Below, piece by piece: positions 8,110-36,134 of a DNA stretch of 64,000 bases. The notes below the pieces were generated by a model. The model ran no database searches and was not told the DNA's origin. It saw nothing but the letters and a program-made list of their open reading frames with translations. Both the position numbers and the translations under genes were made by a program. The DNA is taken from the sequence record AP018399.1, one strand, 5' to 3'. Every line of letters starts with the position of its first letter. The first letter of the stretch is position 1.

Positions 8110-8114
8110 TCTAA

Positions 8115-13098: not shown

Positions 13099-13112
13099 GG
13101 GAGACATGAGAA

Positions 13113-13952: not shown

Positions 13953-13970
13953 CGGGGCTAAATACATTAC

Positions 13971-14348
13971 ATGGCTAATGAGAATCTTTATCGCGGTCTT
14001 TCATTCCGTAACTTTTCCAAGAACAAAAGCATCAAGCTTTATGATGTGGAATTGATTAAGAAAGACCTTTTGAATCACATCTTCACCCGTCGCGGTGAAC
14101 GTGTGAAGATGTTCACATACGGTACTCGCATCCCCGACTTGGTTTTCGAACAGTTGGATGACATTGCATTGACTGTTGTAACCGAAGACCTCAACGCCGT
14201 CGTGGCCTCAGAACCGCGTGTCAGCCTAGTTGACCTACGAATCGTTCCACTATATGACCGTAACGTAATCATCGCAAGCCTTGTCCTGTACTACGTGGAA
14301 CTGGATTTCACTGACCAGTTTGACGTTAGCATCCAGTTTGAATCGTAA
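13971..14348 (+). CDS. gp25: Baseplate wedge subunit gp25
   Basis: IKKDLLNHIFTRRGERV....YGTRIPDLVFE...EPRV. Confidence 0.9.
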   Translation: MANENLYRGLSFRNFSKNKSIKLYDVELIKKDLLNHIFTRRGERVKMFTYGTRIPDLVFEQLDDIALTVVTEDLNAVVASEPRVSLVDLRIVPLYDRNVIIASLVLYYVELDFTDQFDVSIQFES

Positions 14349-14388
14349 TACAGCATAAAATAAATACTCGGAATCGGAATTTTAATTA

Positions 14389-17304: not shown

Positions 17305-17369
17305 GCGGTCAAAAAAGGGCAAAATCACAACCACTAAATAGTTCTATAACATTTTAGGACTGACCAATC

Positions 17370-20300: not shown

Positions 20301-23300
20301 GGTCTATTCAGCAAGACCGCTGGCCTGTTCTTCCTAGACGACCAAATCAATTACGGTGTTGGTGGTACAATCAAGGAACATAACGACGGCTTCGATACGC
20401 TGGTGTCGTCAATCTTCGTGAACAACGGTAATCCGACAACGATTATCAACTTCGCCAAGAACGAATACGACAATCAGGTTCGTTACGTCAAGGAACGTTA
20501 CTATCAGGAAGCCGCTGACCTGTTCAGCAACACGGCTCTAAATGTTTCAGACCTACAGGCTGCTATCACAGAGTCCCTAATTAATTCAGTTGAAAACAAC
20601 GGCAAGTTTGACCAGTGGTTCGGCGATACGACCTCGTATGACGCCGCCACGGCCCTTGGCGTTCGTAATTGGATTGCTACGCTACCTCAGTTCGGCCTAC
20701 AGCCTCGTTCGGTACCGTTCAGCGTTCAGGATAGCTCGCTAGGAATGTACGAAGTTCATTGCCATGACGGCCACGTTACCAACGTCGCCTTCAACCCGGC
20801 AATGACTGAACAGCTAGTCCGTCGCATCACAGCCAACAATCCGTCAATCTCTCAGGTGGTTGCATCGGAAGCTGTGCCATTCCCAACCGACTATGAAGGT
20901 AACCCGCTATCGACTGGCATCTACCTAATCCGTACCAACACAACCGCTCGTACCCGTAAGCTATATCGCTTCGGTGGCGCTGCTGTGTGGGAATTGGTGG
21001 ACGTGAACGCCATCTTCGCAAACACCATCCTAGAAATCGAAAACCGTCTATACGCGGTTGCTCCGGAAGTGTTCGATGCTCGCTACGACTTTACTGACGT
21101 TGAAGCTGACCCAGCATTCGAAGACTTGATGGAAGTTCAGTTCCTAGAATACACACGTCTGGAAGGTATCAGCACACCGCTGAACAACAGCGACCGCTTC
21201 CGCCAGAACAACCCATTCACTTGGAATTACTACTACTCACCAATCCAGAACGACCCGCTAACCGGCCTAGTGTCTTATAACACTGCTGGTACATGGCAGG
21301 CTCTATACGAAAACGTGTTCGGTACGGCGTACCCGCACCTAGAACCGTGGGTTCTACAGGGCTATGACAACAAGCCATCATGGTGGGATGCTCAGTACGC
21401 CGACACAACCGGCTCACGTCGCTGGACTCTAACGATGTGGAGCAACGTGTTCGACGGCATCATTCCAGTTGGACAGACTGCACCGAACGGTAATCCGGGT
21501 ACGGGTACTGTCGGCCAGATTACCAACCGCTTCTCATACCTACCGGTCAACACCGGTTCGGTAGAGACTGATGATGGTTACGGTCTGGACGCAATCCTAC
21601 CACCATACTGGAACACCGTGAACACAACCGACGCTCGCATCCGTGGTCTATATGACCCGAATGCTGGTGAGTTGGTGACGACTCCGCAGTTGAACTTCGA
21701 ATTCGGCCAGAACGGTCTAGTTGAGTGGGAATGGCGTCAGTCGCTATCCTACCTATACGACCGCATGGTTGTTGCTTATAAGATTGACCCGATGCGTTTC
21801 ATGCATGAAACGTTTGGTATCGACTACCAGATTGTTTCGTGTCTACAGATTTCGAAGGAATCGGAGAAGGTGTTCTCACATAAGGACACCATCTTCCACG
21901 GTGACTTCATCGACGCGACGAACAACATCTACAAGGCTTACGGTCTAAATCAGTGGTACGTCCACTACCAGCGCTACAGCGGATTTGACGGTATCTCGTC
22001 AGAGTTCCGTTCGCTATGGAAGGATTGGGATACTGACCTAGCGTACCTAGTTGGTGCGTTCCTAGACACCCCAAGCTTCTCAATCGAATCAGATTTCTTC
22101 GACATTACAACGAAGGACTACGAAATCGCTGTTAAGAAGACCAAGGGTATTGCGGACGAATGGCTAACATCGTTGACTGCGACCGTTCTAAACGTTCCAT
22201 CACCGTATGCGAAGCTTCGTGACCAAGGTATCGGCTGGACCGTGGAAATCAGTGACAATTGTCCGGTTGCCCGTCCTATCCAGTACCACCCAACTCAGAA
22301 CTACTCGGTCAACGTCAACACGTCAGGCCAGCCGTTCCGCATCTTCTCGTACCCGCTAAAGGGTATTGAGCTAGTACCGGCTCGTGGCTTCCAGACTGTT
22401 ACGTACAATTCGCCAGTGGCAATGTCGTCTTCGACCGGCCTAAACCCGGCTACGACGTACACATTTGAAGTGGAATTCAACCAGACCACCCTAGCCAACG
22501 CTACGGTGCTAGGTTCGGATGCCCAGACATTTGGTGACCTGTTCAACGTTCTAGCTGACCAGATTGGTACGGCCGGTTCGTTCGGTATCGAAAACGGTAA
22601 CGTTGTTGTGTATAGCGCTTCGAACGCTCCTACATCGTCAGTGGTCATCACAGACAACACCGTGTTCGCAGCGACAAGTGGCTTCGTACAGCTAGAAACC
22701 CCAGCGTCAACTCCTAATAAGTTTGACGGTGCATTCCGCATTGAAGGTAACTTCTACAGTACGTTCGTTGACGCTGGTCAGATTACCATCACATATTCAA
22801 CGCTGTTCAACGGTACCTACACAATCGACCGTGTGTACTACGATGCGACGACCTACCAGACCTTGATTTTCGTCAAGGAAAACGTAACTCTACCATCGAC
22901 AGGTTCGGTGCTAGTGGATGGTCTACTTGAGCCATTGAACGCCAAGACCCTACCACCAGAGTGGACGACTGGTACGGAAGTGTACTTCAACACAACCGGC
23001 TACCTACCAAACAACTTCGATGACGAAGTTCCATACTACGTCATCCGTTTGAGTGACCGTGAGTTCCGCGTGGCGGAAACCAAGGATGCTGCGTTGAAGG
23101 GTGTCTACGTGACACCGACCAGCAACGCTTTGGGTGAAGTATTCATCGGCAAGATTCTAATGACGTTCCAAGCCCTAGGCGGTCAGTTGACTACCTACAA
23201 CTGGCGTCACCATGCCGTGGACTACCGTTACGTCGATAGCTCAAGCAGCAACTTGATGATTTCAGGTATCCAGCAGGTTGTCGATTTCCTAACCGGCTAT

Positions 23301-26300
23301 GATGCTTATACTCAGACCAACGGCTTCCGTTACCGTAACATCAACGGTGAGAACTACGACGCCACAACTGGATTGAACAACAACTGGCAGACTGTAACCG
23401 AGAAGTTCATCAACTGGCTATATGCCCTACGTAACTTCCAGCAGGAAACCATGCTGTCTTATAAGGTCACTGGCAATGCGTCAAACGACTCGCTAGTGAT
23501 GCTAAACGGCACGGTTCCAAACTGGCAAAACGGTACACCGGTCATCTTGTTGGATGATGCTAACTCAACGCTACCAGCAGAGTTCAACAACCCGCTATCG
23601 TCAATCATCCCTTACTACGTAATTCGTGTACAGGGAAGCCTAACTGAGTTCAAGCTAGCCGCTACGGCGTATGATGCTGCGCGTGGTAATGCCATCCCAA
23701 TGACCGACAGCGGCGTTGGTGCATTCCGTGTGCAGGTTTACAAGGCCGTGTCTCAGTACCCAACTTACGAGTTGAACCCATTCAAGCATTACATTTGGGT
23801 TCACCATGAGCAGGGTGTCCTATCGAACGTGTTGGACGATGACTACACTGACCCAACCAGCGCAGCCCGTCTATACGATAACAACGGTATCGAATTGACC
23901 ACGGCCAACGTACTTGTGTTCCGTGAAGACAAGGAAAGTCGTATCTCCCTAACCGAAGATACGATTGCCCAGAACCGTCTAGCCGAAGAGCAGAACAAGC
24001 CGACAATGCATATGTCGGGTATGCACCTGTTCTTCGACGGCTACGAACACATGATTCGTTTCAACGATTACTCGGTTGACAATTCGCTAATCTACGACTC
24101 GTTCCTAGGCTTGAACACTCCACGCTTCTACGTGGAATTCGACCGTCAGCAAGACTTCACCCTACGTCCTAACGTGGGTGGTTTCTACATGCTAGGCGAA
24201 AGCTTGGTTCAGAACTTCGAATCGACAGTCAACGACATGCGTTACTACTACGACAGCGTGAAGGCACCGGAAGGTCGCGTCACAACTGACCTAGTTCGCA
24301 AGTCGCTTGGCTACGATGGTCCGAAGGACTACATGAGCGACCTAAAGATTAACCCGAAGACACAGTTCCAGTTCTGGCAGGCTATGATTCAGAACAAGGG
24401 TACGAACCGTGCGGTCCGTGCTTTCACGAACCAGTCAATCTTCGACTCCGCTGTGGTTGACGAATTCTGGGCTTATAAGCTGGCTGAATTCGGTGACAAC
24501 AAGGAACGTAATTACATTGAAATGAAGCTCTTCCCATCTGACGTGGTGAAGAACGACCTACGTATCGAATTCATTGCTCCTGAGAATGCTGCCATCGACA
24601 GCACCTTCACTGGTGTTGAACTAACGGACATGAACCGTTGGTGGGACCAGCCAGACCAGATTGAAGCAATGCGTCCATACGAAGCGTTCTTCTTCAACAC
24701 GAAGGTGAGCAGCATCATCGACAACATCGCGTCGGTTGTCCAGCGTATTGACAACCGTATCATTTACGTATTCAACGATTTTGTTGATAGCGTGGTGATG
24801 ACGTACTTCGACCCAACTACTCAGACAACCAAGGTGTTGAACGAGGGCGTTGAGTATCGCTTCCTAAACTCAAAGGTAATTGAGTTCCTAATCGAACCGG
24901 GCGTTCTACCGCCGATTACTGCCAGCACGTTGTCTTACGACTACGACGCCCAGAATCCGGCCAAGCTAATCGACAAGGACGCTGGTATTGTCCTAGCTAC
25001 TGTTCCATTCTGGCACCCGGCTATCGGCCAATACTACAACGTACCGTACTACGCTGTTGACCTACGTCGTCCAACCGACCCGGCAATCTACACGACTTCG
25101 CTAGATGGTGGTAACACCGGTAGCGCAACGTGGAAGAAGAACCATGTCGGAACCGTGTGGATGGATAGCAGCATCGAACAGTACCTACCGTACTTCGACA
25201 AGACTGTATACCCAGCTATCAACGACCGTATCAACAAGTGGGGTAAGCTAGCTGATTGGGCTGATATCAACCTGTACCAGTGGACCGAATCTACCGTCCC
25301 ACCGGAATCATATGATGAATTGGCACGTCGCCAGTCATTCGATATGTCCATTCCGGACGAAGACAAGGCAACTGGTGAAACCTACAAGTTGCTATACCAG
25401 AACGTCAACTACGATAGCCCGGACGATGTGGACGCACCGCCATTCTGGATTCAGATTCAGGATACACACTACGACTTCATCGCTGGTCTAAGCTCACAGG
25501 GCATGGATACAACGTTGGCTGGTAAGAAGGCCGAAATCTTCATCAACGGTAAATTCCTAGAAGCAATCACGTTTGAAGACGCTCAGGCTGTACACGCTTA
25601 CTTCGCACAGTTCAACTTCGGTGACTACTGTCACGCGATTGTTCGTGCCCATGTTCCGACCGCTGACGAAATTCAGGCCGGTGCGTATGCGTACTACACA
25701 CCACACAGCATCGAAAAGCGTTTCGATGTGAAGTCGGGTACGACATACAATGTCTACTACTATTGGGTCAAGGACAAGAAGCAGCCGGTATCACCATTGG
25801 CTACCAGCGTTTCTCTATACTCGGCCAAGAAGCAGCTTGTCGATATGTCCGACCCGTACATGATTCTACAGGGTGTACGTACTCCGGACTTCGGTTACGG
25901 CCTAATCTTCGGTCACGTATTCGATGAATTCGCTTACAATCTACCTTACCGCTACACCCAGATGATTGCCAAGGGTCTACATGGCACAGTGAAGGACAAC
26001 AACCGCACGGTTATGCGTTTCACTCGTGACTTCACCCTACGCGACAAGCTGGACAAGGACAGCATCACTCCGAAGAACAAGCATGAAGAGTGGAAGCTAT
26101 TCCGTGAGCAGCAGCTAGAGAAGGTTGACCGCTACCTATGGAACAAGGTGACTGAGGCTCTAATCGGCTTCAAGTTGAACCTAGACGCTACAGCAGCGAC
26201 CGATGAGGCCATCCCATCGTTGAACCGAATCCTATTCGACCGTATCTACCAAGCTGATACTCAGTACGGTATGGGCGACGAACAGGTATTCACCAACAAG

Positions 26301-27311
26301 GACTTGTCACGCCAGACCATCCTAGCGGTCCTAACCGACCCTAACCGTGAGTTTGAATACGTAAACATCGAAGAGTTCCTAGCACGCCATGACTTCCTAA
26401 CACCGGAAGATATCATCGCTGCCATGAATGAAATCTACTTGAACTTCTCAGTGTCAGAAGTCAACACGATTTTCTTCGCGGTCCTACACGATGCTATGAG
26501 CTTGAAGATGGAACATTCTGAAATCTTTAAGACTTCGTGGGTTGCTCTACAGATTTCGCAGAATGTCGTACCGTCGATTCCGATGCCATATGACGAGCTA
26601 CGTCTAGTTCCGGGTCCAGACTGTGCGGCTCCACCGCCGTCACCGTCTCCGACACCAACACCGACAACTACGCCGCAGCTAAGCCCAACACCTACTCCGA
26701 CACCGGACACCTGTGGCAACGGTCCAGATGACCGTATCCTTGAAGATGGTGAGGGACGTATCACGGAAGACGGTCAGTGCCGTATCGTTGAACCGTATGT
26801 GCCAGAGCCTACTCCGACACCTACACCAACACCTACACCGATTCCTCAGTGTGGCGATGGCGACGATGACCGTGTAACAGAAGACGGTGAAGGTCGCATC
26901 ACCGAAGATGGTGAGTGTCGCATTGTGGAACCAGTGGTTAATAATCGCCAGATTGTAGGTACGATGTATGTCTATGACATGGGAGAAGGTGGTCAAAATC
27001 TATGGATAGCAACCACCGAAGGCTATTGTGGTCCAGAGGTTATTACATCACTGGAAGCCGTGGGGGACTATGTAACCGTTGACCCTATCAATGACACATG
27101 GGATTGTCCAGTTACCGACCAAGAGTTCAATGACCCGGTTACATACTCAATCATTCTAGGACCAGAAGTTCCGGAAGGAAATGGTAATTGGGTGGCAAAT
27201 ACGGGCGCATTGAGCGGTTACAGCCCATCGTCTCGTCAATATGTAATGGAATTGATTGTGAATGGAACTGACACAATTTATGTGTGGATGGTAATTTCCG
27301 AGGGTGTATGA
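17370..27311 (+). CDS. Giant baseplate wedge/structural protein (gp7-like position), 3313 aa, C-terminal Pro/Thr tracts
   Basis: Uninterrupted ORF after gp6; GTG start with AGGA RBS and TAAATA at 17335-17340. Confidence 0.7.
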   Translation: MADNNSDYKKTNFNLNDFLPETNKGEFLDSLNKNLFNRYLTKDEFDHIVGIIGDADPNDKVTKPIKERTAFRQDNQLQPVVTEKIGSVNHFMGFEDFMTRIGRTGVDTEKFDQWGNALQFNWVPPIDLDKIVNYRDYYWNSTANPDHAIPQYIVIKSQKNWTAARYVQALKTIVDITGVVPVESFDIPTQKLMLPGNVASSYVAGNHLVLSQADGSLQLVTIASATYNFASTKTEIATVESFTLSSAANLSVYISPVELPVVSISGENLTLNGNFTNLLIEGYVVGVNTNPARLYTVKTSTFDTVTNVTTVTLDGLTVVGFNTLSLYPALALIQAEAEFTADNDTSYPTGGWDNNNIGKIFWYRNTEILNGTQGSTSLGSNILQDLTKNYLVFGIQNTDELQINVGNKNAGKYTINSVTPTTIQTNSGQFFSASTISYRVIRPFSFESISDSTPPLSPSLNQMWYNTATDTLSQWNGSTWNLVYIGISNLAKLVNDRIVTNFSNENDWSDDNEWVHTSQITEFTGMIRAQMPIIEYFPYLDMSETSYSEKVWRYRKDDALSYVDSAVGPKMIELMNFTYSGSEFTFPDVNTMQFDQKFGNFVGELEVGDEVVLSGFTQNDGIYTIATKEYYQPGPGQRYVSRITFTTPIISTTDLPMGANFGPYLTSNGDLFAGLDAKQWEFGGVQDIRASSLAPTKNPMLDVNVATGTSNGFEWILGLNSQTYSSQGNIVVEPTFFFDTSLHDLVLYDDYQEGDIRVYINGKRVYGAFEDLASWVDPDYVGGIKFINGYTVYASDIVRIELGEYAIEDIGLRAILVNTPIGNELYNLTNVRKIEQRKSESNQYPYFALRDIYGERLNLATSIFKYAESESSAINANVLKRIVTNGDGTDYTFVQELKDPATGRLYCYYDYQEVGDELQTIWKHGTYSEQYVPTKVDGAWEMPNQWYYNISHDNYTEVKLTEIFRHFKSIIDLQEQPGLFSKTAGLFFLDDQINYGVGGTIKEHNDGFDTLVSSIFVNNGNPTTIINFAKNEYDNQVRYVKERYYQEAADLFSNTALNVSDLQAAITESLINSVENNGKFDQWFGDTTSYDAATALGVRNWIATLPQFGLQPRSVPFSVQDSSLGMYEVHCHDGHVTNVAFNPAMTEQLVRRITANNPSISQVVASEAVPFPTDYEGNPLSTGIYLIRTNTTARTRKLYRFGGAAVWELVDVNAIFANTILEIENRLYAVAPEVFDARYDFTDVEADPAFEDLMEVQFLEYTRLEGISTPLNNSDRFRQNNPFTWNYYYSPIQNDPLTGLVSYNTAGTWQALYENVFGTAYPHLEPWVLQGYDNKPSWWDAQYADTTGSRRWTLTMWSNVFDGIIPVGQTAPNGNPGTGTVGQITNRFSYLPVNTGSVETDDGYGLDAILPPYWNTVNTTDARIRGLYDPNAGELVTTPQLNFEFGQNGLVEWEWRQSLSYLYDRMVVAYKIDPMRFMHETFGIDYQIVSCLQISKESEKVFSHKDTIFHGDFIDATNNIYKAYGLNQWYVHYQRYSGFDGISSEFRSLWKDWDTDLAYLVGAFLDTPSFSIESDFFDITTKDYEIAVKKTKGIADEWLTSLTATVLNVPSPYAKLRDQGIGWTVEISDNCPVARPIQYHPTQNYSVNVNTSGQPFRIFSYPLKGIELVPARGFQTVTYNSPVAMSSSTGLNPATTYTFEVEFNQTTLANATVLGSDAQTFGDLFNVLADQIGTAGSFGIENGNVVVYSASNAPTSSVVITDNTVFAATSGFVQLETPASTPNKFDGAFRIEGNFYSTFVDAGQITITYSTLFNGTYTIDRVYYDATTYQTLIFVKENVTLPSTGSVLVDGLLEPLNAKTLPPEWTTGTEVYFNTTGYLPNNFDDEVPYYVIRLSDREFRVAETKDAALKGVYVTPTSNALGEVFIGKILMTFQALGGQLTTYNWRHHAVDYRYVDSSSSNLMISGIQQVVDFLTGYDAYTQTNGFRYRNINGENYDATTGLNNNWQTVTEKFINWLYALRNFQQETMLSYKVTGNASNDSLVMLNGTVPNWQNGTPVILLDDANSTLPAEFNNPLSSIIPYYVIRVQGSLTEFKLAATAYDAARGNAIPMTDSGVGAFRVQVYKAVSQYPTYELNPFKHYIWVHHEQGVLSNVLDDDYTDPTSAARLYDNNGIELTTANVLVFREDKESRISLTEDTIAQNRLAEEQNKPTMHMSGMHLFFDGYEHMIRFNDYSVDNSLIYDSFLGLNTPRFYVEFDRQQDFTLRPNVGGFYMLGESLVQNFESTVNDMRYYYDSVKAPEGRVTTDLVRKSLGYDGPKDYMSDLKINPKTQFQFWQAMIQNKGTNRAVRAFTNQSIFDSAVVDEFWAYKLAEFGDNKERNYIEMKLFPSDVVKNDLRIEFIAPENAAIDSTFTGVELTDMNRWWDQPDQIEAMRPYEAFFFNTKVSSIIDNIASVVQRIDNRIIYVFNDFVDSVVMTYFDPTTQTTKVLNEGVEYRFLNSKVIEFLIEPGVLPPITASTLSYDYDAQNPAKLIDKDAGIVLATVPFWHPAIGQYYNVPYYAVDLRRPTDPAIYTTSLDGGNTGSATWKKNHVGTVWMDSSIEQYLPYFDKTVYPAINDRINKWGKLADWADINLYQWTESTVPPESYDELARRQSFDMSIPDEDKATGETYKLLYQNVNYDSPDDVDAPPFWIQIQDTHYDFIAGLSSQGMDTTLAGKKAEIFINGKFLEAITFEDAQAVHAYFAQFNFGDYCHAIVRAHVPTADEIQAGAYAYYTPHSIEKRFDVKSGTTYNVYYYWVKDKKQPVSPLATSVSLYSAKKQLVDMSDPYMILQGVRTPDFGYGLIFGHVFDEFAYNLPYRYTQMIAKGLHGTVKDNNRTVMRFTRDFTLRDKLDKDSITPKNKHEEWKLFREQQLEKVDRYLWNKVTEALIGFKLNLDATAATDEAIPSLNRILFDRIYQADTQYGMGDEQVFTNKDLSRQTILAVLTDPNREFEYVNIEEFLARHDFLTPEDIIAAMNEIYLNFSVSEVNTIFFAVLHDAMSLKMEHSEIFKTSWVALQISQNVVPSIPMPYDELRLVPGPDCAAPPPSPSPTPTPTTTPQLSPTPTPTPDTCGNGPDDRILEDGEGRITEDGQCRIVEPYVPEPTPTPTPTPTPIPQCGDGDDDRVTEDGEGRITEDGECRIVEPVVNNRQIVGTMYVYDMGEGGQNLWIATTEGYCGPEVITSLEAVGDYVTVDPINDTWDCPVTDQEFNDPVTYSIILGPEVPEGNGNWVANTGALSGYSPSSRQYVMELIVNGTDTIYVWMVISEGV
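26712..26933 (+). repeat. Two 28-aa Cys-flanked acidic repeats separated by a PT linker
   Basis: CGNGPDDRILEDGEGRITEDGQCRIVEP (26712-26795) and CGDGDDDRVTEDGEGRITEDGECRIVEP (26850-26933). Confidence 0.9.
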
Positions 27312-27829
27312 TTGATGTGCATGTCCTAACCATGAGGAATCATCCGCCGTATGGGCGGCGGGAGAATCTTCCTTATATTCTGGACGCACTTTCCAGAGAG
27401 CCAGTCAACGTTCATCTAGTGGACGTTGACCAAATTGGTAATGAAACTGCCATGAGAATAAAGGCTCTACAGAAGGGTACCTCAGAATGGGTCGGGTGGG
27501 TTGACCCGGATGATGAAATCATTCCGGGTGCTTACCAGATGCTACTTGACCACAAAGGTAATACGTCATTCGCATGGTCAAATGAACTTGTCAATTCATT
27601 TGACCGAAATGGAAAATTGGTAAGTACGACAGTTTACCGCGAGCCGCATCACATGATGATTATTCATCGTGATGTTCTTGACCTAGATTATCTCGCAAAA
27701 CGAGAATTCGCAACAGTCATTGGACTCCATCCTCTTATGAAGATTGGAACCCATGTAAATGAAATTGGATATGTCTGGAATCGTCATCCTGATTCCGACT
27801 GTGAAGTAGCCAAACGCCTATATAAATAA
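27308..27829 (+). CDS. Small GT-A (GT2-like) glycosyltransferase
   Basis: Beta-strand start IDVHVLT, RIKALQKGTSEWVGWVDPDDEI (DxDD motif); ATG 27308 overlaps the TGA of the giant protein. Confidence 0.65.
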   Translation: MIDVHVLTMRNHPPYGRRENLPYILDALSREPVNVHLVDVDQIGNETAMRIKALQKGTSEWVGWVDPDDEIIPGAYQMLLDHKGNTSFAWSNELVNSFDRNGKLVSTTVYREPHHMMIIHRDVLDLDYLAKREFATVIGLHPLMKIGTHVNEIGYVWNRHPDSDCEVAKRLYK

Positions 27830-27849
27830 CATCAAGGAACCCTAAAACC

Positions 27850-28563
27850 ATGTCCCAACGTATCAGTGACCTAACCCCCGTTTCAAGTATTGCCGGTGAC
27901 GAGCTAGTTGAAGTTGCCGTTCCCAATAGTGAATCTCCGACCGGATATGTAAGCCGCTCGGCAAGTACCTCCCTATTCGGTGGCGGTGGTGGACTACCAT
28001 ATCGCTTTACTTTCGAAATCAACGACGAGCCTATCGGCAGTGACCTATCATTCCAATTGTATTTGGAAAAGGGACAGTTTGATAGTACAGCATTCCGCCC
28101 AAATGCAGATTCGGACCCTGATGGTGACTGGACCCTAGCTACTGCTATCATGAATTTCAATGCTATTGCTGGCTTCCATTTCTCTTCGGAAGATAACTTC
28201 CAGTTTTACGCATTTTCACCGCTTAATTCATCGGTATGGGTAAACAAGATGGGCGGCGCTCTAGGAAGTGGTGCTGACTCGGATGCTGACCAGTTGCGTT
28301 GGGGTACATTCAATAACAGCAATGACCTATCAATTTACCAGATTCCCGATAACTACCCATCAAGCAACTACATGAATAACACTCCGGTAATTGCTCCGGT
28401 TGAAGTTTATGAAGATGGTAACTTCGGTCCGGACGGTTCTATTGTGATTCGCTTCCGCGTTGTATCTCCGTATAATGGATGGGGTACATACCCACAGACA
28501 TTCAGCCTCAAAGGATACGCCGATATTAACATGGCATTCAGCAACTTCTATCGTCCGGCATGA
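27850..28563 (+). CDS. Putative tail fibre/appendage protein
   Basis: N-terminal RISDLTPVSSIAGDELVEV fibre-type motif; exact TATAAATA at 27821-27828. Confidence 0.5.
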   Translation: MSQRISDLTPVSSIAGDELVEVAVPNSESPTGYVSRSASTSLFGGGGGLPYRFTFEINDEPIGSDLSFQLYLEKGQFDSTAFRPNADSDPDGDWTLATAIMNFNAIAGFHFSSEDNFQFYAFSPLNSSVWVNKMGGALGSGADSDADQLRWGTFNNSNDLSIYQIPDNYPSSNYMNNTPVIAPVEVYEDGNFGPDGSIVIRFRVVSPYNGWGTYPQTFSLKGYADINMAFSNFYRPA

Positions 28564-29228
28564 TTTTAAATTTTGAAGGACAGCACTCAGGGGACGTGAT
28601 TATGGCATTGCCGGTAATCACGTCCCTTCGGCTTTCCGGGGTAGACGTTAAAATTTATGTAGCCGAAGACTACAGGTATCTTCTAACAGGGCTTGGTCTG
28701 GAATATGTAAGTGAACCTATTGGCCCTAGGCTATCAACCCAAAACATTACCGGCCACGCTACTGAATTCTGGTTGGATTACTTCCGAGTAGAGCCGGTGA
28801 AGATGGACGTTCCGACTCTTCCTGCTACACCAACGGTGGTACTATCTCCGGATGCTCGTACACACGTTCGTAGATTTCCAAATGAATTCTGGGAAGCGAT
28901 TGTATGGTGGTGTAGTGACCGGAACCTGCCAGTGACGGTGATTGGTCCCAAGGATGCTGTCAAACGTAACGCATTCCTAAGCGGCCCAAACGTCACCAAC
29001 CTCACGGGTGAGCAGACGATTGAAGAAACCTACGCGACGCTGAAACATGCTCTGGCGGTCGTTACGACGGACACCGGAACATCACATCTATCCGATGCTT
29101 TGAACGATGTAACGGTCACAGCATTCCGTGTAAATAATGATGAAAAGTTTGCGCCATATTGGAATCGGAGAGTCGTGAAAGACTTATCCGGTGCGATAAA
29201 GCACCTTGAAACATTGATAAATAAGTGA
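28560..29228 (+). CDS. GT9 (heptosyltransferase-like) glycosyltransferase
   Basis: SGDVIMALP..., NLTGEQTIEETYATLKHALAVVTTDTGTSHLSDAL (D.G..H.A motif); ATGA overlap with upstream gene. Confidence 0.8.
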   Translation: MILNFEGQHSGDVIMALPVITSLRLSGVDVKIYVAEDYRYLLTGLGLEYVSEPIGPRLSTQNITGHATEFWLDYFRVEPVKMDVPTLPATPTVVLSPDARTHVRRFPNEFWEAIVWWCSDRNLPVTVIGPKDAVKRNAFLSGPNVTNLTGEQTIEETYATLKHALAVVTTDTGTSHLSDALNDVTVTAFRVNNDEKFAPYWNRRVVKDLSGAIKHLETLINK

Positions 29229-29247
29229 ACTAACCAAGGTTGAAGAA

Positions 29248-30456
29248 ATGTCGAACCCCGTAACACTAAATCTGCCAGTTCAGATTGACACTCGTGTCAT
29301 CATTTCGAACGCTGAAACTGGCGAAGTTCTGGTTGATAAGCCGAACTCAATCCACAGCCAGAACATGGCTCGTGTTCTAGCCCGTGGCCTTGCTCGTGAA
29401 GCCAACTATTACATTCGCCGCATGGCATTTGGTAACGGTGGTACATTCCGTGACGCTGCTGGTAACCTAGTCTACAACCCGCCGAATGACGGCCGTGACG
29501 GTAGCTGGGAATCTCGTTTGTATAACGAAACTTATTCCGAAATCATTGACGACTCTGACCCGCTATTCGGTGAAGACCCCGGTTCAGCCGAATCAGGTAA
29601 TATTCGTCCGGGTGGCGGTGCAATCCCGACCGACGACCCGACTGGTGCCGGTGTGGTGTCACAGGAAGTTGGTACCAAGTCCAACGTCATCTGTACTGTT
29701 TATTTGAATAACAACGAACCAATGGGTCAGGTGGATTCACACTACGACCCGGCCACGATTGCCAACCCAGACAACCGCTGCTTCCAGTTCGATGAACTTG
29801 GCCTATACAGCCCCGGCGCTCCGGCAACAGCCACTAACGGCTATTCGTCCGTAAACGTCAACGACGCGACCTCTGAGACGGCTACCACGCTGGCTCCTAA
29901 TACAACCTACCAGATTTCCATTGACGTTGACGGAATCACGTACAGCGCGATTCTGACGACTCCGGGCGGTGGTTCAGGTCCGACCAGCCAGTTCACCTAC
30001 GGTGATATCTGTGAAGGTATCAACACCGGCTCATGGATTACTGGCGGTGACCCAATCAATGACGTTGTGTACGTCTACATCACCGACCGTTCAGGTGGTA
30101 CGTACCCAACCATCATCGGCAAGCAGTCCTACGGCTTCCTACTGTTCCAGAGCAAGACCCTTGGTGCAGGCTCAAGTGTGAACCTGAACTGTTCAACTGC
30201 CAGCCCAACCAATTTCTTCAATGTTTTGACAAGTGGTTCATGTGTTAACGTGAATGTCAATCAGGAACAGGGTGAAAATGCTGGTGTTGCGAACGACCCC
30301 ACAAATCCGAGCAACGAACGCGAACGCCTCTTGACACATCTGATTTTTGACCCTATCCTTAAGTCCACATTCCGCTCATTGAAGATTGTGTACATACTAA
30401 CGGTATCAGTTCCTAAGACTACGGATAGTCAGACAGAAGTGGTAACAGGGGCATAA
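29248..30456 (+). CDS. Putative baseplate/fibre-attachment structural protein
   Basis: MAFGNGGT...RLYNETY...FDELGLY...LLTHLIFDPILKS; TAAATA at 29218-29223. Confidence 0.55.
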   Translation: MSNPVTLNLPVQIDTRVIISNAETGEVLVDKPNSIHSQNMARVLARGLAREANYYIRRMAFGNGGTFRDAAGNLVYNPPNDGRDGSWESRLYNETYSEIIDDSDPLFGEDPGSAESGNIRPGGGAIPTDDPTGAGVVSQEVGTKSNVICTVYLNNNEPMGQVDSHYDPATIANPDNRCFQFDELGLYSPGAPATATNGYSSVNVNDATSETATTLAPNTTYQISIDVDGITYSAILTTPGGGSGPTSQFTYGDICEGINTGSWITGGDPINDVVYVYITDRSGGTYPTIIGKQSYGFLLFQSKTLGAGSSVNLNCSTASPTNFFNVLTSGSCVNVNVNQEQGENAGVANDPTNPSNERERLLTHLIFDPILKSTFRSLKIVYILTVSVPKTTDSQTEVVTGA

Positions 30457-30480
30457 GGTTAGTGGTTTTTCCTTCATGCA

Positions 30481-30547
30481 AGAAAATGTCCGCGAAAGCG
30501 GACATTTTCTTTTGTGCTAAACAAAATGTCCGCTTTCGCGGACATTT
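30481..30547. terminator. Bidirectional terminator formed by two inverted copies of one GAAA hairpin
   Basis: AGAAAATGTCCGC-GAAA-GCGGACATTTTCT then AAATGTCCGC-TTTC-GCGGACATTT, between convergent operons. Confidence 0.85.
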
Positions 30548-30550
30548 ATG

Positions 30551-32191
30551 TTAGTTCTTGTAGTGTTCATTCTCTCGTCGGGTCTTCCCGTCGTAATGGT
30601 ACACGCGATTGTGGTTGATGACCGTCGCTAGCAGGCTACCGACCTTCAACTTCCCTTCACGCATGTGCATCATGGTCTGGCTCATCCAAGTCTGTTCATA
30701 AAGGTGAGCGTACTGGACTTCCTTGAAGACGACCTGTGTACCCTTCTTCGTGAACATGATAGGCCAGTTGCAGTAGTGGTATTCACCTACTGCGTATGGC
30801 AGACCCTTATGGCTGTTGGTGTAGAACACCTTGGTCGCCCAATTCTCACCACCCTTCTCCGGTTCCGGGAAGTATTCCTGACGCTTGTGTTCGGGAAGAT
30901 TCTTGTAGGCCCAATTGTGGTGGTTGTCACCATAGAACTCGGTGAAGGCAAGCTTCAAGTAATCTAGCTGCTCATTCTTCATGATATCCATGCACTTGTC
31001 GAACACGTCATCGTGGAAGGTTGTGAAACCCATCTTACACGGAGCCGCACCACGCTGCTGCATTAGCATGTCGTCTTCGAAGAACACCATGTAATTGTGC
31101 TTGGATTCTAGGAAGTGTTCTGCTGCGAACTGACGACCGCCATTGATGCCGATGTTGTCCTTCTTGAACTCTTCGAAACCATACTTCTCAAACAATGCCT
31201 TGTACTTCTTGTCTACACGCTTGTCGGTGGAGTTGTTGATAACGTACTTACGAACCTGTTTGAACACGTCTGGGAACGCCGAAATGAATGACTCAGCCCA
31301 TAGTTCAAACTGCTGTGGTAGATTATAAGTTAGCACGTATACGGCTAGTTCCTCTTCCACGTCCGGCAAGGGTCGGTCTTTTAGGTCTTGTAGGTAACGG
31401 TAAACTAGACCGTTGCTCTCAATCATACGTACATTCACCTTTTCTGGATGCTTGTATGCGATGATAGTGAAGATGGATTCCTCGGTACCCATCAATCCCT
31501 GATTCAACGAGTCGTTCAACAAACCGTAGTAGATATCGTTGATATCGTTGATTATGTGCTTCGGACCACCGAAGATACCACCACGGCACACGTACTGCGT
31601 ATCAGCACCGGCCATACGGTTCATGGCATTCTTTTCAAAGCCGTGAACTTCTAGGGTACCGTCATACGGGAACGCGACGTAGAGCATCTTGTTCATGTCC
31701 TGCGTAACGCGACGTTCGAAGTCAGCGTCCAAGTAAGCAGTAGGGTCGCCAATGGTATTTGCAATACCGGCGTCAATCCATAGGTAATACTTGGTGTCGA
31801 AGAAGTTGAAGTGGGTAGCGTCGTTCAAGAAGAACTGCTTGGACATTACAAGTGGGTTGTATAGCTCAAGCTTGGCCTGAGTGGAGTCCGGTAGCCAACC
31901 TGCGTAATTGAACCACTTCTCATCGGTACGAATCTTTTGTACTTGGTCGTAGAACGGGAACGCACGAAGGTCATCCAGCGTCTTGAAAATCAGACGGGTG
32001 TTCTCCTGCTTACGATACTTCCAGATGGTTTCTGCGAGCTTTTCTTCACAGTAGATTACCATCGGATAATCCACCTTCAATAGCTTGCTGAACGACTCAA
32101 CGTAGTGGTCGAACGAACGCTTGAAGCCGGAATCCAAGTCTCCGCGACCAAGGTCAAATAGGGCTGTAACTAGGGTAAGATTGCCGGCCAT
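30551..32191 (-). CDS. HtrL/YibB-family glycosyltransferase-like domain fused to a GT-A (GT2-like) domain
   Basis: LTLVTALFDLGR, YLWIDAG, GGIFGG, GTEESI; second domain AVYVLTYN...YVINNSTD...NIGINGGRQ...MVFFEDDML. Confidence 0.75.
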   Translation of the reverse strand: MAGNLTLVTALFDLGRGDLDSGFKRSFDHYVESFSKLLKVDYPMVIYCEEKLAETIWKYRKQENTRLIFKTLDDLRAFPFYDQVQKIRTDEKWFNYAGWLPDSTQAKLELYNPLVMSKQFFLNDATHFNFFDTKYYLWIDAGIANTIGDPTAYLDADFERRVTQDMNKMLYVAFPYDGTLEVHGFEKNAMNRMAGADTQYVCRGGIFGGPKHIINDINDIYYGLLNDSLNQGLMGTEESIFTIIAYKHPEKVNVRMIESNGLVYRYLQDLKDRPLPDVEEELAVYVLTYNLPQQFELWAESFISAFPDVFKQVRKYVINNSTDKRVDKKYKALFEKYGFEEFKKDNIGINGGRQFAAEHFLESKHNYMVFFEDDMLMQQRGAAPCKMGFTTFHDDVFDKCMDIMKNEQLDYLKLAFTEFYGDNHHNWAYKNLPEHKRQEYFPEPEKGGENWATKVFYTNSHKGLPYAVGEYHYCNWPIMFTKKGTQVVFKEVQYAHLYEQTWMSQTMMHMREGKLKVGSLLATVINHNRVYHYDGKTRRENEHYKN

Positions 32192-32194
32192 TGC

Positions 32195-32935
32195 TTAAAT
32201 AATCCTCATAATTTTGTCGTGATGTAGATACCTAAATGTATGTAGAACTGGATTTGTTCGCATGAAATTCAGGATGGGTGTATTGGGTAGATTCGACTCA
32301 CTCATGGCGTAAGAAATCTCCAAAGCTTCAATGAACGGGTTGATTCCTCGGTCATGGCAGCGCTTGGTAATCTCAACCCATGTGTCCATGAATGTCTTGA
32401 ATTCCGGACAATTTGGCTTGAAGAACATGAACACTTCGATGGGCATCTTGGCCTTAATCTTATTCATGTCGATACTCAACGCCTGAGCCTTCGGGTCCAG
32501 TAGGAACGCGATACCACCTTCCTCGCATGGACGATTGCGGAAGCGAGCGATTAGACCCTGTTCCGGCTGTGCGATGAAGTTCTGGAAGTCTTCTTCGTCC
32601 CAGCCAATCAGGAAGCCGTCAGCATCCGAATGGATAATCATGTCGTAACCGCCACGTTCGTATGCTACCTTCGTAGGTAGAATCTTCAAATTGAAGTTGA
32701 ACATGCGTTCAGCAAACCAAATGTTTTGGTCAGACACCGACTTGAATTCCACGATATGGATTCGGTTGGCGTCAAGTTCCGGATGCTCATTCACGTAGGT
32801 CGTCAATTCCTTAACATCATCGGTGATGACAATCACATCACCCTTGGTTAGAAGGTTGACGCAATCAATCAGAGTGCGGACTTTGTAATTGTGTTCCACG
32901 CCAAGGGCGAGGCTTGCGAATGCATACTTATGCAC
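32195..32935 (-). CDS. GT-A-like glycosyltransferase (DxD)
   Basis: VIVITDD, FNFNLK, IIHSDADGFL; co-transcribed with the GT cluster. Confidence 0.55.
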   Translation of the reverse strand: MHKYAFASLALGVEHNYKVRTLIDCVNLLTKGDVIVITDDVKELTTYVNEHPELDANRIHIVEFKSVSDQNIWFAERMFNFNLKILPTKVAYERGGYDMIIHSDADGFLIGWDEEDFQNFIAQPEQGLIARFRNRPCEEGGIAFLLDPKAQALSIDMNKIKAKMPIEVFMFFKPNCPEFKTFMDTWVEITKRCHDRGINPFIEALEISYAMSESNLPNTPILNFMRTNPVLHTFRYLHHDKIMRII

Positions 32936-33788
32936 GAATCACCTTAAAGAAATCTGAGAACGCTACGTGAACGTTCGGGTCGTACAGGTCAATCGGCCAG
33001 TCGTCATGGTACCAGCTATTGAACTTGAAATTTGTGTAAAGCTCTGGCTCACGCTGGTGAAGGTAGTACATGATTTCCTCTTCCTTGAGAAGAACGTCAT
33101 GGTCAATCACAAGCTGCATGTGCGTCGTTGCCTTGCCGATGTAATCCAACAGTACGTCACGCTTGCCGCCGAAGATACCGCCGATTACGGCGTATTCTGG
33201 ACGGTCTGGGTAGACTTGTACGTAATCGTCAGAGCCGTGGTTCACGGTCTGTGACAGGATATTCAGCACCTTGTCGCCAGCGTGCTTGTTCAGGTCTTCA
33301 AATAGATTACGCTTCTGGTTGATGAGGTCGAAATCGTAGAACGACTTACTCTCTGGACTACGGAACTTATTGGTAATCAGGCCACCGTGGAAGATACCGG
33401 CATCAATCCAGTACAGGCTATCGCCAGCTTCTAGCTCCGTGGTATTCTTCCAGAGCCAGTAGAACTTACCCCACATGATTTCCACACAGCGGGAACGCCA
33501 TGCATCTTCGGTAGTGTACTTCGCCTTACGGTCCTTGATGGCTTCAATCTGCTGATGGAAGTAGTTCTCGGATAGTTCCTCGACAACCAACTTGACATTC
33601 GGATGATTCTCAAACCAATTGGTCAAGTCTTCCAGATGCGCAGAAGCAGTATAGCAGACGATGGAGTAGCCACCGTCTGCCAGAGAGCGAAGCGAAAGTT
33701 TGTAGCGGTCATAGATGGCCGCTGTGTTACCGTTATATCGTGTGCCCTCTAGTCCAGTATAGATTGCAGTTACGAATTGGGGCTTCAC
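32928..33788 (-). CDS. HtrL/YibB-family glycosyltransferase-like protein
   Basis: FVTAIY, MWGKFYWL, LYWIDAGI, GGIFGG, EEEIM; paralogue of 30551..32191. Confidence 0.7.
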   Translation of the reverse strand: MKPQFVTAIYTGLEGTRYNGNTAAIYDRYKLSLRSLADGGYSIVCYTASAHLEDLTNWFENHPNVKLVVEELSENYFHQQIEAIKDRKAKYTTEDAWRSRCVEIMWGKFYWLWKNTTELEAGDSLYWIDAGIFHGGLITNKFRSPESKSFYDFDLINQKRNLFEDLNKHAGDKVLNILSQTVNHGSDDYVQVYPDRPEYAVIGGIFGGKRDVLLDYIGKATTHMQLVIDHDVLLKEEEIMYYLHQREPELYTNFKFNSWYHDDWPIDLYDPNVHVAFSDFFKVIRA

Positions 33789-33790
33789 GG

Positions 33791-36088
33791 TTATTCCTCT
33801 ATCAATTTAACCTTGTCTACTGCGCCTAGAATGGCTGGGGCTAGGTATTCATGGTCTAGGTTACTGACCTTGCCTAGCTGGCAGTACCATAGGTACATTG
33901 CCTCCCACTGATTGCTTAGCCATTCTACATTTTCAAAATTGCCACCGAAGAACTTCACTGATGGGTGTAGTTCGCCCATACCACGACCGAACTTGTCACT
34001 CAACCACTTCTCATCGAATGTCGTGTTGACGATATCACGCTTAGCCGATAGGATTAGGTGTGAATTGTTCTGCGACATTGTAATTAGATTGTTCAAGTCC
34101 TTCTGGAAGGTCGCCGGGTCGAACTGAGCTAGGTCAACGAAGACGTGGTGTGAAGCCATGTAGCGGTCTTCGTTCAACGCTTCCTTCGTCCATAGCAGAC
34201 GAATCTTGTCATAGGCACCAACGACCGTCTTCTCTCCGTGGTAGTTCTTGAGGTACACATGACGCGGTTCCACAGTGTAGACATGGAAGCCAGTCAGGTC
34301 ATGCTTAGCCTTGGTGGACTCTTCGGTGATGATGACTACATTGTCCTTACCACGTAGAGCCGCTAGGTTCTTGGCAATCGTTTCGTGCTGGTCCGGAGAC
34401 TGTTCGAACACGAACGCATTGACGCCCATTCCTGCGCGAGCCTTCTTCGAAGTGAATACCGGCGAACGCTTGAACTTACGGGCATCCTTCTTCTTGAAGA
34501 TGAGGTTACCCTTGTAGTAGATAGCGTCCATTTCCGAGTTGTCTAGGATGGAGAATGCATCCGATAGACGGGTCAGAATTGGCTTACCATTCACGTTGAA
34601 CGAAGTGTTCAAGATGACAGCATGACCGGCGTGCTTTTCGAACTCGGTGATTAGGTCATAGATTAGTTCGTTCTGTAGACGGGTCACCGTCTGTAGACGA
34701 GCCGTACCGTCCGTGTGGGTGATGGCCGGGAGCGTTGCCTTGTACTCTTCACGCACGTTGGCGACGAACGTCATATGACGCGACTCAACGTTGTAGTCGT
34801 AGTGGAAATACTTGTTGGCATCCTCTAGACGCACGATAGGAGCGAACGGACGGTACCATTCACGATGCTTGACCTTGTGGTTCAGCACATCCTTCATGTC
34901 GCCTGACGGGTTACAGATGATTGAGCGATTGCCTAGCGCACGCGAACCATGTTCCGAATTACCTTGGATTAGACCGACGATGTTGTTGTCAGCCACGAAC
35001 TCAGCAAGCTCCTGAACCGTCACGTTCTCGTAAACGAAATACTTTGACTGGTCCTGAATGTAGGTTGAGAATTCCTTGTCGTCCAGAATCGGTAGACCGG
35101 AGTAGGTCAGGTCAACCGGGTACTTCGGAGCGATGTGCCATAGCAGGCCACCAGCGGAGATACCACAGTCGCTAGTGTTCGGCGGAACGAAGACGTTACC
35201 ACCCTTGATTTCAAGCAGACGAGCGTTCAGAAGAACGTTCAGACCACAACCACCAGACACGACTAGCGGAATGTGACTGTACTGTTCTAGGAACGGCCCT
35301 GCCAATTCAAGGAAGACTTCCTCAAAGGCTTTCTGGGTCGTAGCAGCGATATCCCAAGCGACCTGACCGCTAAAGCGCGTCTTTTCAAAGTCAAATCCTT
35401 CGAATAGACCGATAGCGGTTAGTAGGTCGGTGACAGCCTTGGTTCGCAGTTCTAGACCACCGATGTAGGAGTCTCCACTGTATACGAATTGCTTGTAGTA
35501 GTGTTTGAAGGCATCCATCCACTCTTCGCGGACGGTACCATACGAGCATAGACCCATCAGCTTACCGGCATACACAAGGTTGCCGATGCTCAAGGAATCT
35601 CGCTTGATATCCTCAAGGTAGTCGGCAAGCAGCATGTATGGGAAGCCAAGGTCATTAGGTAGACGATGGATGAGCTTGATACCTGTGTTTCGGTCAGCTT
35701 CGTAGAAATTGAAGTAGCTACCATCACCGCCACCGTCGAACGAAATGGCTAGAGCCTTGTCGAACGGTGACTGGTAGAAAGCAGCCGCAGCATGTGCAAC
35801 ATGGTGGTCTGCGGCTAGTTGCTTCTTGTACTTGAACTTCGGAACAATCTTGCTCACGTAACCGGTGATGTAAACGTCAACTTCTGTCTTACCAGCCTTG
35901 GCTAGAAGCCAATCGGTAATCTCATCGAACACCACCTGTGGATGTGAACACGGCATGTAATTCACCAAGCCGATGTTCTTTGAGTTCAACCAACGTTCTA
36001 CTTCAACTACAGTGTATTCGCCCTTGTAATACATTGAGATTGCGGCGTTATGGGAACCATACGCCGAAATCACCAGATAATCGTTCAT
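33791..36088 (-). CDS. NodU/CmcH/TobZ-family O-carbamoyltransferase with C-terminal degenerate HtrL-like domain
   Basis: HHVAHAAAAFYQSPF, FDGGGD, GKLMGL, GGCGLN, D.GIS.G, EHGSRALGNRSI, REWYRPFAP, H.DGTARLQTV, LNTSFN..GKPI. Confidence 0.92.
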   Translation of the reverse strand: MNDYLVISAYGSHNAAISMYYKGEYTVVEVERWLNSKNIGLVNYMPCSHPQVVFDEITDWLLAKAGKTEVDVYITGYVSKIVPKFKYKKQLAADHHVAHAAAAFYQSPFDKALAISFDGGGDGSYFNFYEADRNTGIKLIHRLPNDLGFPYMLLADYLEDIKRDSLSIGNLVYAGKLMGLCSYGTVREEWMDAFKHYYKQFVYSGDSYIGGLELRTKAVTDLLTAIGLFEGFDFEKTRFSGQVAWDIAATTQKAFEEVFLELAGPFLEQYSHIPLVVSGGCGLNVLLNARLLEIKGGNVFVPPNTSDCGISAGGLLWHIAPKYPVDLTYSGLPILDDKEFSTYIQDQSKYFVYENVTVQELAEFVADNNIVGLIQGNSEHGSRALGNRSIICNPSGDMKDVLNHKVKHREWYRPFAPIVRLEDANKYFHYDYNVESRHMTFVANVREEYKATLPAITHTDGTARLQTVTRLQNELIYDLITEFEKHAGHAVILNTSFNVNGKPILTRLSDAFSILDNSEMDAIYYKGNLIFKKKDARKFKRSPVFTSKKARAGMGVNAFVFEQSPDQHETIAKNLAALRGKDNVVIITEESTKAKHDLTGFHVYTVEPRHVYLKNYHGEKTVVGAYDKIRLLWTKEALNEDRYMASHHVFVDLAQFDPATFQKDLNNLITMSQNNSHLILSAKRDIVNTTFDEKWLSDKFGRGMGELHPSVKFFGGNFENVEWLSNQWEAMYLWYCQLGKVSNLDHEYLAPAILGAVDKVKLIEE

Positions 36089-36134
36089 TGTGTACCTTTG
36101 AATTGTTTTGACTTAGTATTTACCATTCTGCCAA

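Follow-up and report, generated by a model that had tools for sequence, protein, structure and literature searches.

The DNA analysed here, referred to below as the window, is a stretch of 64,000 nucleotides from the record of the jumbo phage XacN1 of Xanthomonas (AP018399.1; record coordinates are obtained by adding 186000 to window coordinates, 26500-30500 matching 212500-216500 at 100% by megablast). On its plus strand, two small open reading frames (ORFs) for putative glycosyltransferases (GTs), ORF326 and ORF328, are interleaved with genes of the tail and baseplate. The best reading of the data, which we hold with evenly balanced confidence, is a late-expressed glycosylation of tail or baseplate proteins by the products of these two genes.

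Organization of the locus

In the GenBank annotation, the plus strand carries ORF322 (M23 peptidase), ORF323 and ORF324 (baseplate wedge), ORF325 (3313 aa, hypothetical), ORF326 (173 aa, hypothetical), ORF327 (237 aa, predicted ORF), ORF328 (222 aa, glycosyltransferase family 9) and ORF329 (402 aa, hypothetical). ORF325 (17370..27311, plus strand) encodes a giant protein and lies 3′ of a gp6-like baseplate wedge gene; it has no Pfam match, and homologues of its C-terminal region are present in related loci. Its stop codon overlaps the start of ORF326 (27308..27829, plus strand), which is followed by ORF327 (27850..28563, plus strand), ORF328 (28560..29228, plus strand) and ORF329 (29248..30456, plus strand). 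The last of these is a conserved protein (phrog_11259) whose N-terminal ~190 aa are common to many jumbo phages, and its gene directly follows GT9 wherever the jumbo lineage carries a GT9 gene.

A hairpin with a perfect 10-bp stem and a 4-nt loop (30524..30547) separates ORF329 from the convergent ORF330. It is the best terminator-like site within positions 13000-31000 of the window, an interval in which no such site above chance was found inside the tail operon, and it is likely a bidirectional terminator closing this operon. Beyond it, the minus strand carries a cassette of sugar-modification genes (ORF330-ORF334, 30551..37508) comprising the HtrL/YibB-like ORF330, ORF331, ORF332, a NodU-type carbamoyltransferase (ORF333) and a GT60-type protein (ORF334, PF11397); ORF333 and ORF334 are named carbamoyltransferase and glycosyltransferase, respectively, in GenBank.

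ORF326 is a predicted minimal GT-A enzyme

Taken alone, ORF326 scores 19.5 bits against the Pfam GT2 profile (PF00535), below the cut-off of 23.3. We collected 12 homologues and aligned them with ORF326. All 13 members of this family match PF00535 at E ≤ 0.01 (best 3.3e-7), and D66-x-D68-D69, H114-H115 and R121 are invariant in the alignment. The AlphaFold2 model of ORF326 is of high quality (predicted local distance difference test score, pLDDT, 90.3; predicted template modelling score, pTM, 0.85), and Foldseek matched it to the GT-A enzymes AvpGT, SpsA, WrtF and K4CP with E-values of 5e-7 to 1e-5, a probability of 1.00 and query-based template modelling scores (TMq) of about 0.6. A GT-A fold with a DxD motif is thus found by model, structural matches and alignment alike. 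The preliminary description of this DNA had proposed a GT-A enzyme here, and a glycosyltransferase remains credible on the family profile matches, the fold of the model and the invariant DxDD; together these point to a minimal GT-A enzyme overlooked by public annotation. A GTG codon at 27284 was considered as the start of ORF326 and rejected, since all homologues share identical first five residues at the ATG.

ORF326 resembles SpsA-type GT2 enzymes (PDB 1QG8, 1H7L) in its GT-A fold and in the DxD following the third strand (Foldseek E ~1e-6, TMq 0.62). It differs from them in length (173 aa instead of ~240-256 aa), with 11-17% identity and a shortened acceptor-side half, and, unlike them, is itself under the Pfam gathering threshold.

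ORF328 and the mini-GT9 class

ORF328 matches the GT9 profile PF01075 over residues 89-205 with 57.4 bits, for a cut-off of 22. Its earlier assignment to GT9 is therefore correct, and with 222 aa it is short for this family. A word search produced 10 relatives of ORF328, all of 207-242 aa. A profile search of 1.84 billion representatives gave 2800 matches at E ≤ 1e-3; among the best 150 of these 2800, about 31 are 200-275 aa long and align over the entire ORF328, whereas classic GT9 proteins of 310-390 aa align with the profile through their C-terminal domain only. Some gene calls of this short type lack the N-terminus merely because the start was placed too late. ORF328 is thus not a fragment but a member of a mostly viral class of short GT9 proteins of 200-275 aa, which we call mini-GT9. 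The ESM Atlas model of ORF328 (pTM 0.84) exhibits the two-domain GT-B fold and superposes on three GT9 clusters over residues 1-222 with template modelling (TM) scores of 0.83-0.86; its nearest feature clusters in the Atlas consist of short GT9 proteins that belong mainly to Uroviricota. No relative came out of a scan in which GTDB species genomes were searched with ORF328-family patterns.

In a comparison with PDB sequences, ORF328 aligned with E. coli heptosyltransferase I (HepI). G11-D12 of ORF328 correspond to G12-D13 of HepI, where Asp13 is the catalytic base, R104 aligns with K192, a conservative change, and the sequence DTGTSHL (D171) aligns with DTGLSHL (D261). The three catalytic and donor-binding residues of HepI (Asp13, Lys192, Asp261) all have their counterparts in ORF328, Lys192 being replaced by Arg. 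In an alignment of 27 mini-GT9 sequences, the GD motif, a K or R at the Lys192 position, D171, H176 and D179 are invariant or nearly so. A profile built from these 27 sequences detected HepI (9.6e-18), HepII (2e-16) and, more weakly, TibC (3.1e-6) in the PDB. In the same search, the chloroplast NDH subunit PnsB1 matched the GT9 C-domain at E ~1e-5, a case where the fold serves as a structural subunit.

Resemblance to the lipopolysaccharide (LPS) heptosyltransferases WaaC and WaaF (PDB 2GT1, 2H1H, 1PSW) includes the GT9 domain, the GD motif of Asp13, the DTGxSHL motif of Asp261, the two-domain fold (TM 0.86 over residues 1-222) and the nucleotide-sugar-binding C-domain (E 1e-17 with the family profile). 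The differences are no less clear. WaaC and WaaF are basic proteins of 320-350 aa, whereas ORF328 has 222 aa, is acidic, carries Arg in place of Lys192, and has an acceptor-side N-domain about half the usual size (~85 aa, versus ~165 aa in LPS heptosyltransferases). ORF328 also falls far below all the equivalog models for LPS heptosyltransferases I, II and III (TIGR02193, TIGR02195, TIGR02201), with a best score of 44.6 bits versus 185.3, and aligns to them by its C-domain alone; moreover, the published LPS cores of the host genus are devoid of heptose. Its isoelectric point (pI) is 5.7, and 4.7 for the N-domain, as compared to a median of 9.3 for 91 GT9 proteins of classic length, 95% of which are above 8. 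This acidity argues against an anionic acceptor such as lipid A linked to 3-deoxy-D-manno-octulosonate (Kdo).

These comparisons bear on the possibility that ORF326 and ORF328 modify host envelope glycans during infection (LPS core, O-antigen or xanthan-type exopolysaccharide). This could mask the receptor and so keep progeny from being caught on debris, or it could block superinfection. The enzymes and the receptor-binding cassette would then travel together on account of the host specificity of both. We consider this unlikely, if by no means negligible. The mini-GT9 profile does most resemble LPS heptosyltransferases I and II, and about half of the mini-GT9 proteins are basic, but ORF328 is one of the acidic ones and has only ~85 aa left in its acceptor-side N-domain. 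In addition, late expression in a lytic phage would leave newly made LPS scant time to reach the surface.

Mini-GT9 genes in other phage lineages

A second lineage of mini-GT9 was surveyed in nine contigs forming five clusters at 50% identity. IMG/VR scans for this lineage were negative when the alignment was used and gave one locus when a single protein was used. The contigs are podophage-like and encode Phage_capsid_4, an adaptor of the SU10 type and a ~2300-aa internal protein. In the five clusters, the mini-GT9 gene lies directly 3′ of a gene for a protein of ~900-967 aa, whose N-terminus matches the tail-fibre family phrog_12940 in the two cases scanned (E 1e-18 and 9e-15; L055 and L060, the L numbers designating individual loci or contigs). 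Overlaps at this junction measure 1, 4 or 14 nt, and 59 nt as called in L062 and L063. The exception is L056, where the mini-GT9 gene follows that of a 397-aa protein. At 6811-9634 of this contig, the two flanking ORFs (397 and 307 aa) match positions 511-682 and 766-858 of phrog_511, annotated 'internal virion protein'. Judging from these matches, it looks as if the GT9 gene had been placed between two pieces of a gene that is single elsewhere.

A short metagenomic contig (L066, 3132-7810) carries a gene for a 269-aa mini-GT9 that overlaps by 4 nt the 3′ end of the gene for a 1290-aa RTX (HemolysinCabind)-repeat protein. By analogy, this layout recalls adhesin-glycosyltransferase pairs. In all, three of the four lineages have their mini-GT9 gene behind one that encodes a large protein of fibrous or repeat type. 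Repeated overlaps of mini-GT9 genes with the 3′ ends of fibre or repeat-protein genes in unrelated lineages also speak against a role in modifying host envelope glycans.

The closest functional analogy for a GT9 acting on protein is provided by the bacterial autotransporter heptosyltransferases TibC/Aah, GT9-related protein O-glycosyltransferases encoded beside the large fibrous or repeat surface protein that they glycosylate. One may tentatively propose that the short GT9s are phage-specific protein glycosyltransferases that directly modify tail fibres or receptor-binding proteins, as viral counterparts of TibC/Aah, which act on autotransporter adhesins, and with a donor other than ADP-heptose in hosts free of heptose, and that the resulting tail-tip glycan tunes host recognition or protects the fibre; we regard this as possible, though with clearly less than even confidence. 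The similarity of TibC/Aah (PDB 4RB4) to the mini-GT9 profile is detectable (E 3e-6) but much weaker than that of WaaC, and TibC is a dodecamer of 406 aa subunits, as opposed to the 222 aa of ORF328. A member of the TibC/Aah family would be expected to lie closer to TibC than to the LPS enzymes and to have ~400 aa with TibC-specific insertions; by its E-values (3.1e-6 for TibC, 1e-17 for HepI) and its length, ORF328 falls outside this family.

The gene of a classical tail-fibre assembly protein is positioned immediately downstream of the fibre gene. Since the genes studied here also lie directly 3′ of fibre-type genes and overlap them, one or both proteins might be non-enzymatic, acting as sugar- or nucleotide-binding factors that help to assemble or chaperone the fibre-like protein next to them, or being minor constituents of the virion. 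The use of a GT9-like fold as a non-enzymatic subunit in chloroplast NDH (PnsB1) provides a precedent, and both proteins are far smaller than typical members of their families. Nevertheless, both families, distant members included, keep the motifs for donor binding and catalysis with little or no variation, which is not expected under a purely structural role, and we consider this explanation improbable.

Conservation of the module in relatives

The order giant protein gene, GT-A, ORF327, GT9, ORF329 is common to XacN1 and to loci L003, L004 and L005, with GT9 identities down to 49%. It is permuted in L052/L053 and L054 (giant, ~1100 aa, 327-like, GT-A, GT9, 329) and in the isolate Xoo-sp13 (giant, 327-like, GT-A, 329), which lacks the GT9 gene. 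Stenotrophomonas phage RAS14 (giant, 1018 aa, 329) is devoid of homologues of ORF326, ORF327 and ORF328 and retains the minus-strand cassette. The upstream partner of the GT-A gene is therefore the giant gene in XacN1 and the ORF327-like gene in Xoo-sp13, L052 and L054, and in L052 and L054 the GT9 gene comes directly after the GT-A gene. In the relatives, the ORF327-like gene is always found together with the GT-A gene.

We retrieved 46 IMG/VR loci through ORF329. In these, the stretch from the giant or large fibre-type protein to ORF329 is hypervariable, and the GT-A family is present in L015-L018 only, with tandem copies in three of them. The identical slot before the ORF329 homologue is occupied in L014 (6180-6845) and L017 (6158-6817) by genes for ~220-aa proteins with weak matches, below the cut-off, to the MptE/Maf-like family PF01973, which we take to include flagellin glycosyltransferases.

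The preliminary description had accepted that its interpretation would fail if the GT genes were unlinked to these structural genes in relatives. The opposite was observed: no relative possessing the GT genes has lost their linkage to these structural genes. The gene arrangement expected of a virion glycosylation system, with GT genes amid structural genes and a linkage conserved in relatives, is thus found. On this comparative basis, ORF327, GT-A and, where present, GT9 form a single accessory module within the host-range region of the tail. The location of the module in a hypervariable host-range region, where it varies with the host, and the presence nearby of ORF330, an HtrL/YibB-like member of a family from LPS core loci, would also fit a modification of host envelope glycans.

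DNA glycosylation by GT-A and GT-B enzymes of phages is well documented, such enzymes being mentioned in the XacN1 genome paper (PMC5852040), and the top Foldseek match of ORF326, AvpGT, was solved with a nucleoside ligand. ORF326 and ORF328 could accordingly be imagined to glycosylate phage DNA bases against host restriction, like the T-even glucosyltransferases. Their genes, however, are in a late tail operon and not among replication genes, the module is missing from close relatives such as RAS14, with the GT9 gene also missing from Xoo-sp13, and other lineages associate mini-GT9 genes with fibre genes. No sign of modified bases was found here, though none was looked for. We therefore judge this explanation highly improbable.

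Relatives of the region 26800-30500 of the window come from wastewater, groundwater, soil, freshwater and marine-sediment metagenomes, in 14 studies. Two wastewater metatranscriptome libraries contain short contigs covering the giant/ORF326, ORF326/327 and ORF328/329 junctions; as contigs do not demonstrate transcription and DNA carry-over is possible, these were not used as evidence of expression.

ORF327, a candidate fibre-like protein

ORF327 had been described as fibre-like. It matches no named family in Pfam, PHROGs, NCBIfam or the Atlas feature search. Its model is all-beta and poor (pLDDT 58), with best structural matches (Z ≤ 5.1) to C-terminal domains of phage tailspikes and fibres, to baseplate proteins and to jelly rolls of the C1q/TNF type. 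Its relatives share a conserved N-terminus of ~55 residues and a conserved final strand and differ in the middle, a pattern that would fit a small tail-attached or receptor-binding protein. A fibre-like nature is thus plausible from the all-beta model, the type of matches and the pattern of conservation, but the low pLDDT and Z values lend it little weight.

Gene overlaps and translation

Both ATGA overlaps of the locus are real: at 27308-27311, the stop codon of ORF325 (27309-27311) overlaps the ATG of ORF326 (27308), and at 28560-28563 the stop of ORF327 overlaps the start of ORF328. ORF326 has a GAGG 4 nt 5′ of its ATG. No Shine-Dalgarno-like (GGAG-like) sequence was found before the start of ORF328, and re-initiation behind ORF327 is therefore plausible for this gene. 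A stop/start overlap with a downstream gene devoid of its own ribosome-binding site, as expected for a coupled pair, is thus present at ORF328.

It had been argued that such coupling implies a stoichiometry matched with the structural partner. This is not supported. The long-ORF map of the window has 42 same-strand junctions, of which 13 are overlaps, 6 of these being of 4 nt; the overlaps at the GT genes do not exceed chance expectation for the XacN1 genome, and coupling is generic. Overlaps being so common in the window, coupling is uninformative on stoichiometry. An NTGA or TAATG overlap was found 5′ of the GT gene in most of 20 junctions examined (ATGA, GTGA, TTGA or TAATG), irrespective of the upstream gene, which differs with gene order among relatives. 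Neither the giant/GT-A pairing nor the 327/GT9 pairing is conserved, and there is therefore no basis for a partner-specific stoichiometry.

The sugar donor

The preliminary description had further suggested that the phage diverts a host LPS precursor, ADP-heptose, onto its tail proteins. Neither gmhA nor the hldE kinase domain has a match in the XacN1 record, and genes of sugar-nucleotide pathways are absent from the gene table of PMC5852040. The X. campestris core consists of Kdo-Man-Glc with galacturonyl phosphates, and the lipooligosaccharide of X. citri contains Kdo, galacturonic acid, hexoses, rhamnose and 3-acetamido-3,6-dideoxygalactose (Fuc3NAc) (PMC8042644). Overall, Kdo, mannose, glucose, galacturonate, rhamnose and Fuc3NAc are reported for Xanthomonas cores, and heptose is nowhere mentioned (PMC8042644). 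Xanthomonas nonetheless has a GT9 homologue, OpsX (PMC4892815), which indicates that GT9 enzymes function in a heptose-free setting. A literature search revealed nothing specific on a phage heptosyltransferase associated with tail-fibre glycosylation, nor on heptose or ADP-heptose genes in Xanthomonas. ADP-heptose as the donor of ORF328 is doubtful, because the phage lacks gmhA and hldE and the published Xanthomonas cores lack heptose; together with the equivalog score of ORF328 (44.6 bits for 185.3), this speaks against the diversion of an LPS precursor.

Candidate acceptors and virion glycoproteins

XacN1 virions contain at least two glycoprotein bands stained by the periodate-Schiff method (Yoshikawa et al. 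2018, PMC5852040), and such glycoproteins are a further argument against modification of the host envelope as the function of ORF326 and ORF328. In that paper, ORF328 and ORF334 were proposed as makers of the virion glycoproteins by analogy with PBCV-1, and ORF328 was annotated as GT9 and as the sole ORF with a best BLAST match in Xanthomonas, which our GTDB scan did not confirm.

ORF325 contains a Pro/Thr/Ser-rich tract at ~aa 3088-3112 (26631..26705, plus strand), followed by a Cys-flanked acidic repeat, and a Pro/Thr-rich tract at ~aa 3145-3159 (26802..26846, plus strand), followed by the second copy of this repeat. The tracts are located ~200 aa ahead of the C-terminus, and the first is a candidate O-glycosylation site. 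The region 26631-26930 (aa ~3088-3187) is a duplication, each unit consisting of a Pro/Thr linker and a ~28-aa acidic segment between two cysteines. The unit (C-G-x-G-x-D-D-R ... E-D-G-x-C-R-I-V-E-P) is present also in L052 and L054, and equivalent tracts occur in the giant proteins of L002-L005, L052 and L054. Pro/Thr tracts in proteins of the tail cassette co-occur with homologues of ORF330, ORF332 and ORF334 in L001-L019. Both tracts and cassette are missing from L020-L051, except that L045 and L048 have tracts and no detected cassette homologue.

The GT-A gene follows that of a tract-bearing protein in XacN1, L017 and L018, but many tract-bearing loci have no GT-A gene. Because of these loci, and because the neighbours of the lineage-2 GT9 have no tracts, we view ORF326 and ORF328 as additions made to virion glycosylation in particular lineages and not as the core of the process.

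Pro/Thr/Ser-rich tracts also occur elsewhere in the window. The virion-packaged M23 peptidase ORF322 (13113-13952) has one at aa 169-188, found as well in its Xoo-sp13 homologue, and two minus-strand ORFs, at 49607-51637 and 63342-63998, contain many, in 7 and 6 windows respectively.

Discussion

Our results retain part of the interpretation first given to this locus. Both proteins are credible glycosyltransferases encoded in a late tail/baseplate operon and linked to structural genes; the matched stoichiometry and the heptose precursor are not retained. From the folds, motifs, synteny and overlaps described here and from the published virion glycoproteins, we infer acceptors, donors and timing along the following lines. 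ORF326 and ORF328 would be soluble glycosyltransferases, competent in catalysis and expressed late as part of the baseplate/tail operon. Together with ORF327 they would constitute an accessory module that has been inserted after the giant baseplate-associated protein and before ORF329. Most likely they would glycosylate tail or baseplate proteins of the phage itself, in the cytoplasm and ahead of assembly. By one route, the neighbouring GT60 enzyme would begin O-glycans on the giant protein, at its Pro/Thr tracts, and the two enzymes would lengthen them; by another, sugars would be added directly to ORF327 or ORF329. Nucleotide sugars of the host would serve as donors, ADP-heptose probably not being the one used by ORF328. 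Re-initiation is an ordinary expression route for a gene without its own ribosome-binding site, and the start/stop overlaps probably permit translation of the enzymes in this way behind structural genes and would not be a device for 1:1 stoichiometry.

Several observations weigh against glycosylation of tail or baseplate proteins by ORF326 and ORF328. No direct link connects either protein to a glycosylated band. The counts of co-occurrence between tracts and cassette come from related phages and are not independent events. The neighbours of the lineage-2 GT9 are devoid of Pro/Thr tracts, and a P22-like contig has its mini-GT9 gene among small ORFs 5′ of the terminase gene, not by the tail genes. 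By E-value, the mini-GT9 profile is nearer to LPS heptosyltransferases I (1e-17) and II (2e-16), with TibC, the heptosyltransferase that acts on protein, more distant (3e-6). Finally, the structural matches of ORF327, obtained with a poor model (pLDDT 58), are in a range where only a common arrangement may be shared.

The XacN1 locus shares with the mycobacteriophage capsid and tail-tube system (phage GT2-type) and with the Vp54 system of chlorovirus PBCV-1 a virus-encoded soluble GT-A beside structural genes and virions containing glycoproteins. Unlike in those systems, the XacN1 enzymes are located in a tail/baseplate host-range cassette and include a GT9, and the phage has a much larger sugar cassette (GT60, carbamoyltransferase, HtrL-like). 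The central idea, virion glycosylation by ORF328, is already published, since ORF328 and ORF334 had been proposed to make the virion glycoproteins (PMC5852040). The identity of ORF326 as a predicted GT-A, the three-gene module with its permutations, the phage-wide mini-GT9 class located by fibre genes, and the argument against heptose are new here.

Two more general lessons can be drawn from this locus: a GT9 annotation is no proof of heptose in a host with heptose-less LPS, and an ATGA overlap is no proof of stoichiometric pairing. To our knowledge, few systems of glycosylated phage virions have been described, and sugars on the tail or receptor-binding proteins of phages of Gram-negative bacteria are almost unexplored. 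If the proposed glycosylation of tail or baseplate proteins is true, ORF326, ORF327 and ORF328 would represent a compact, portable module travelling with host-range cassettes. The two enzymes would provide very small glycosyltransferase scaffolds for enzymology, and the glycans that they make would be a variable that could affect the adsorption, stability and serology of phages under development for the biocontrol of citrus canker.

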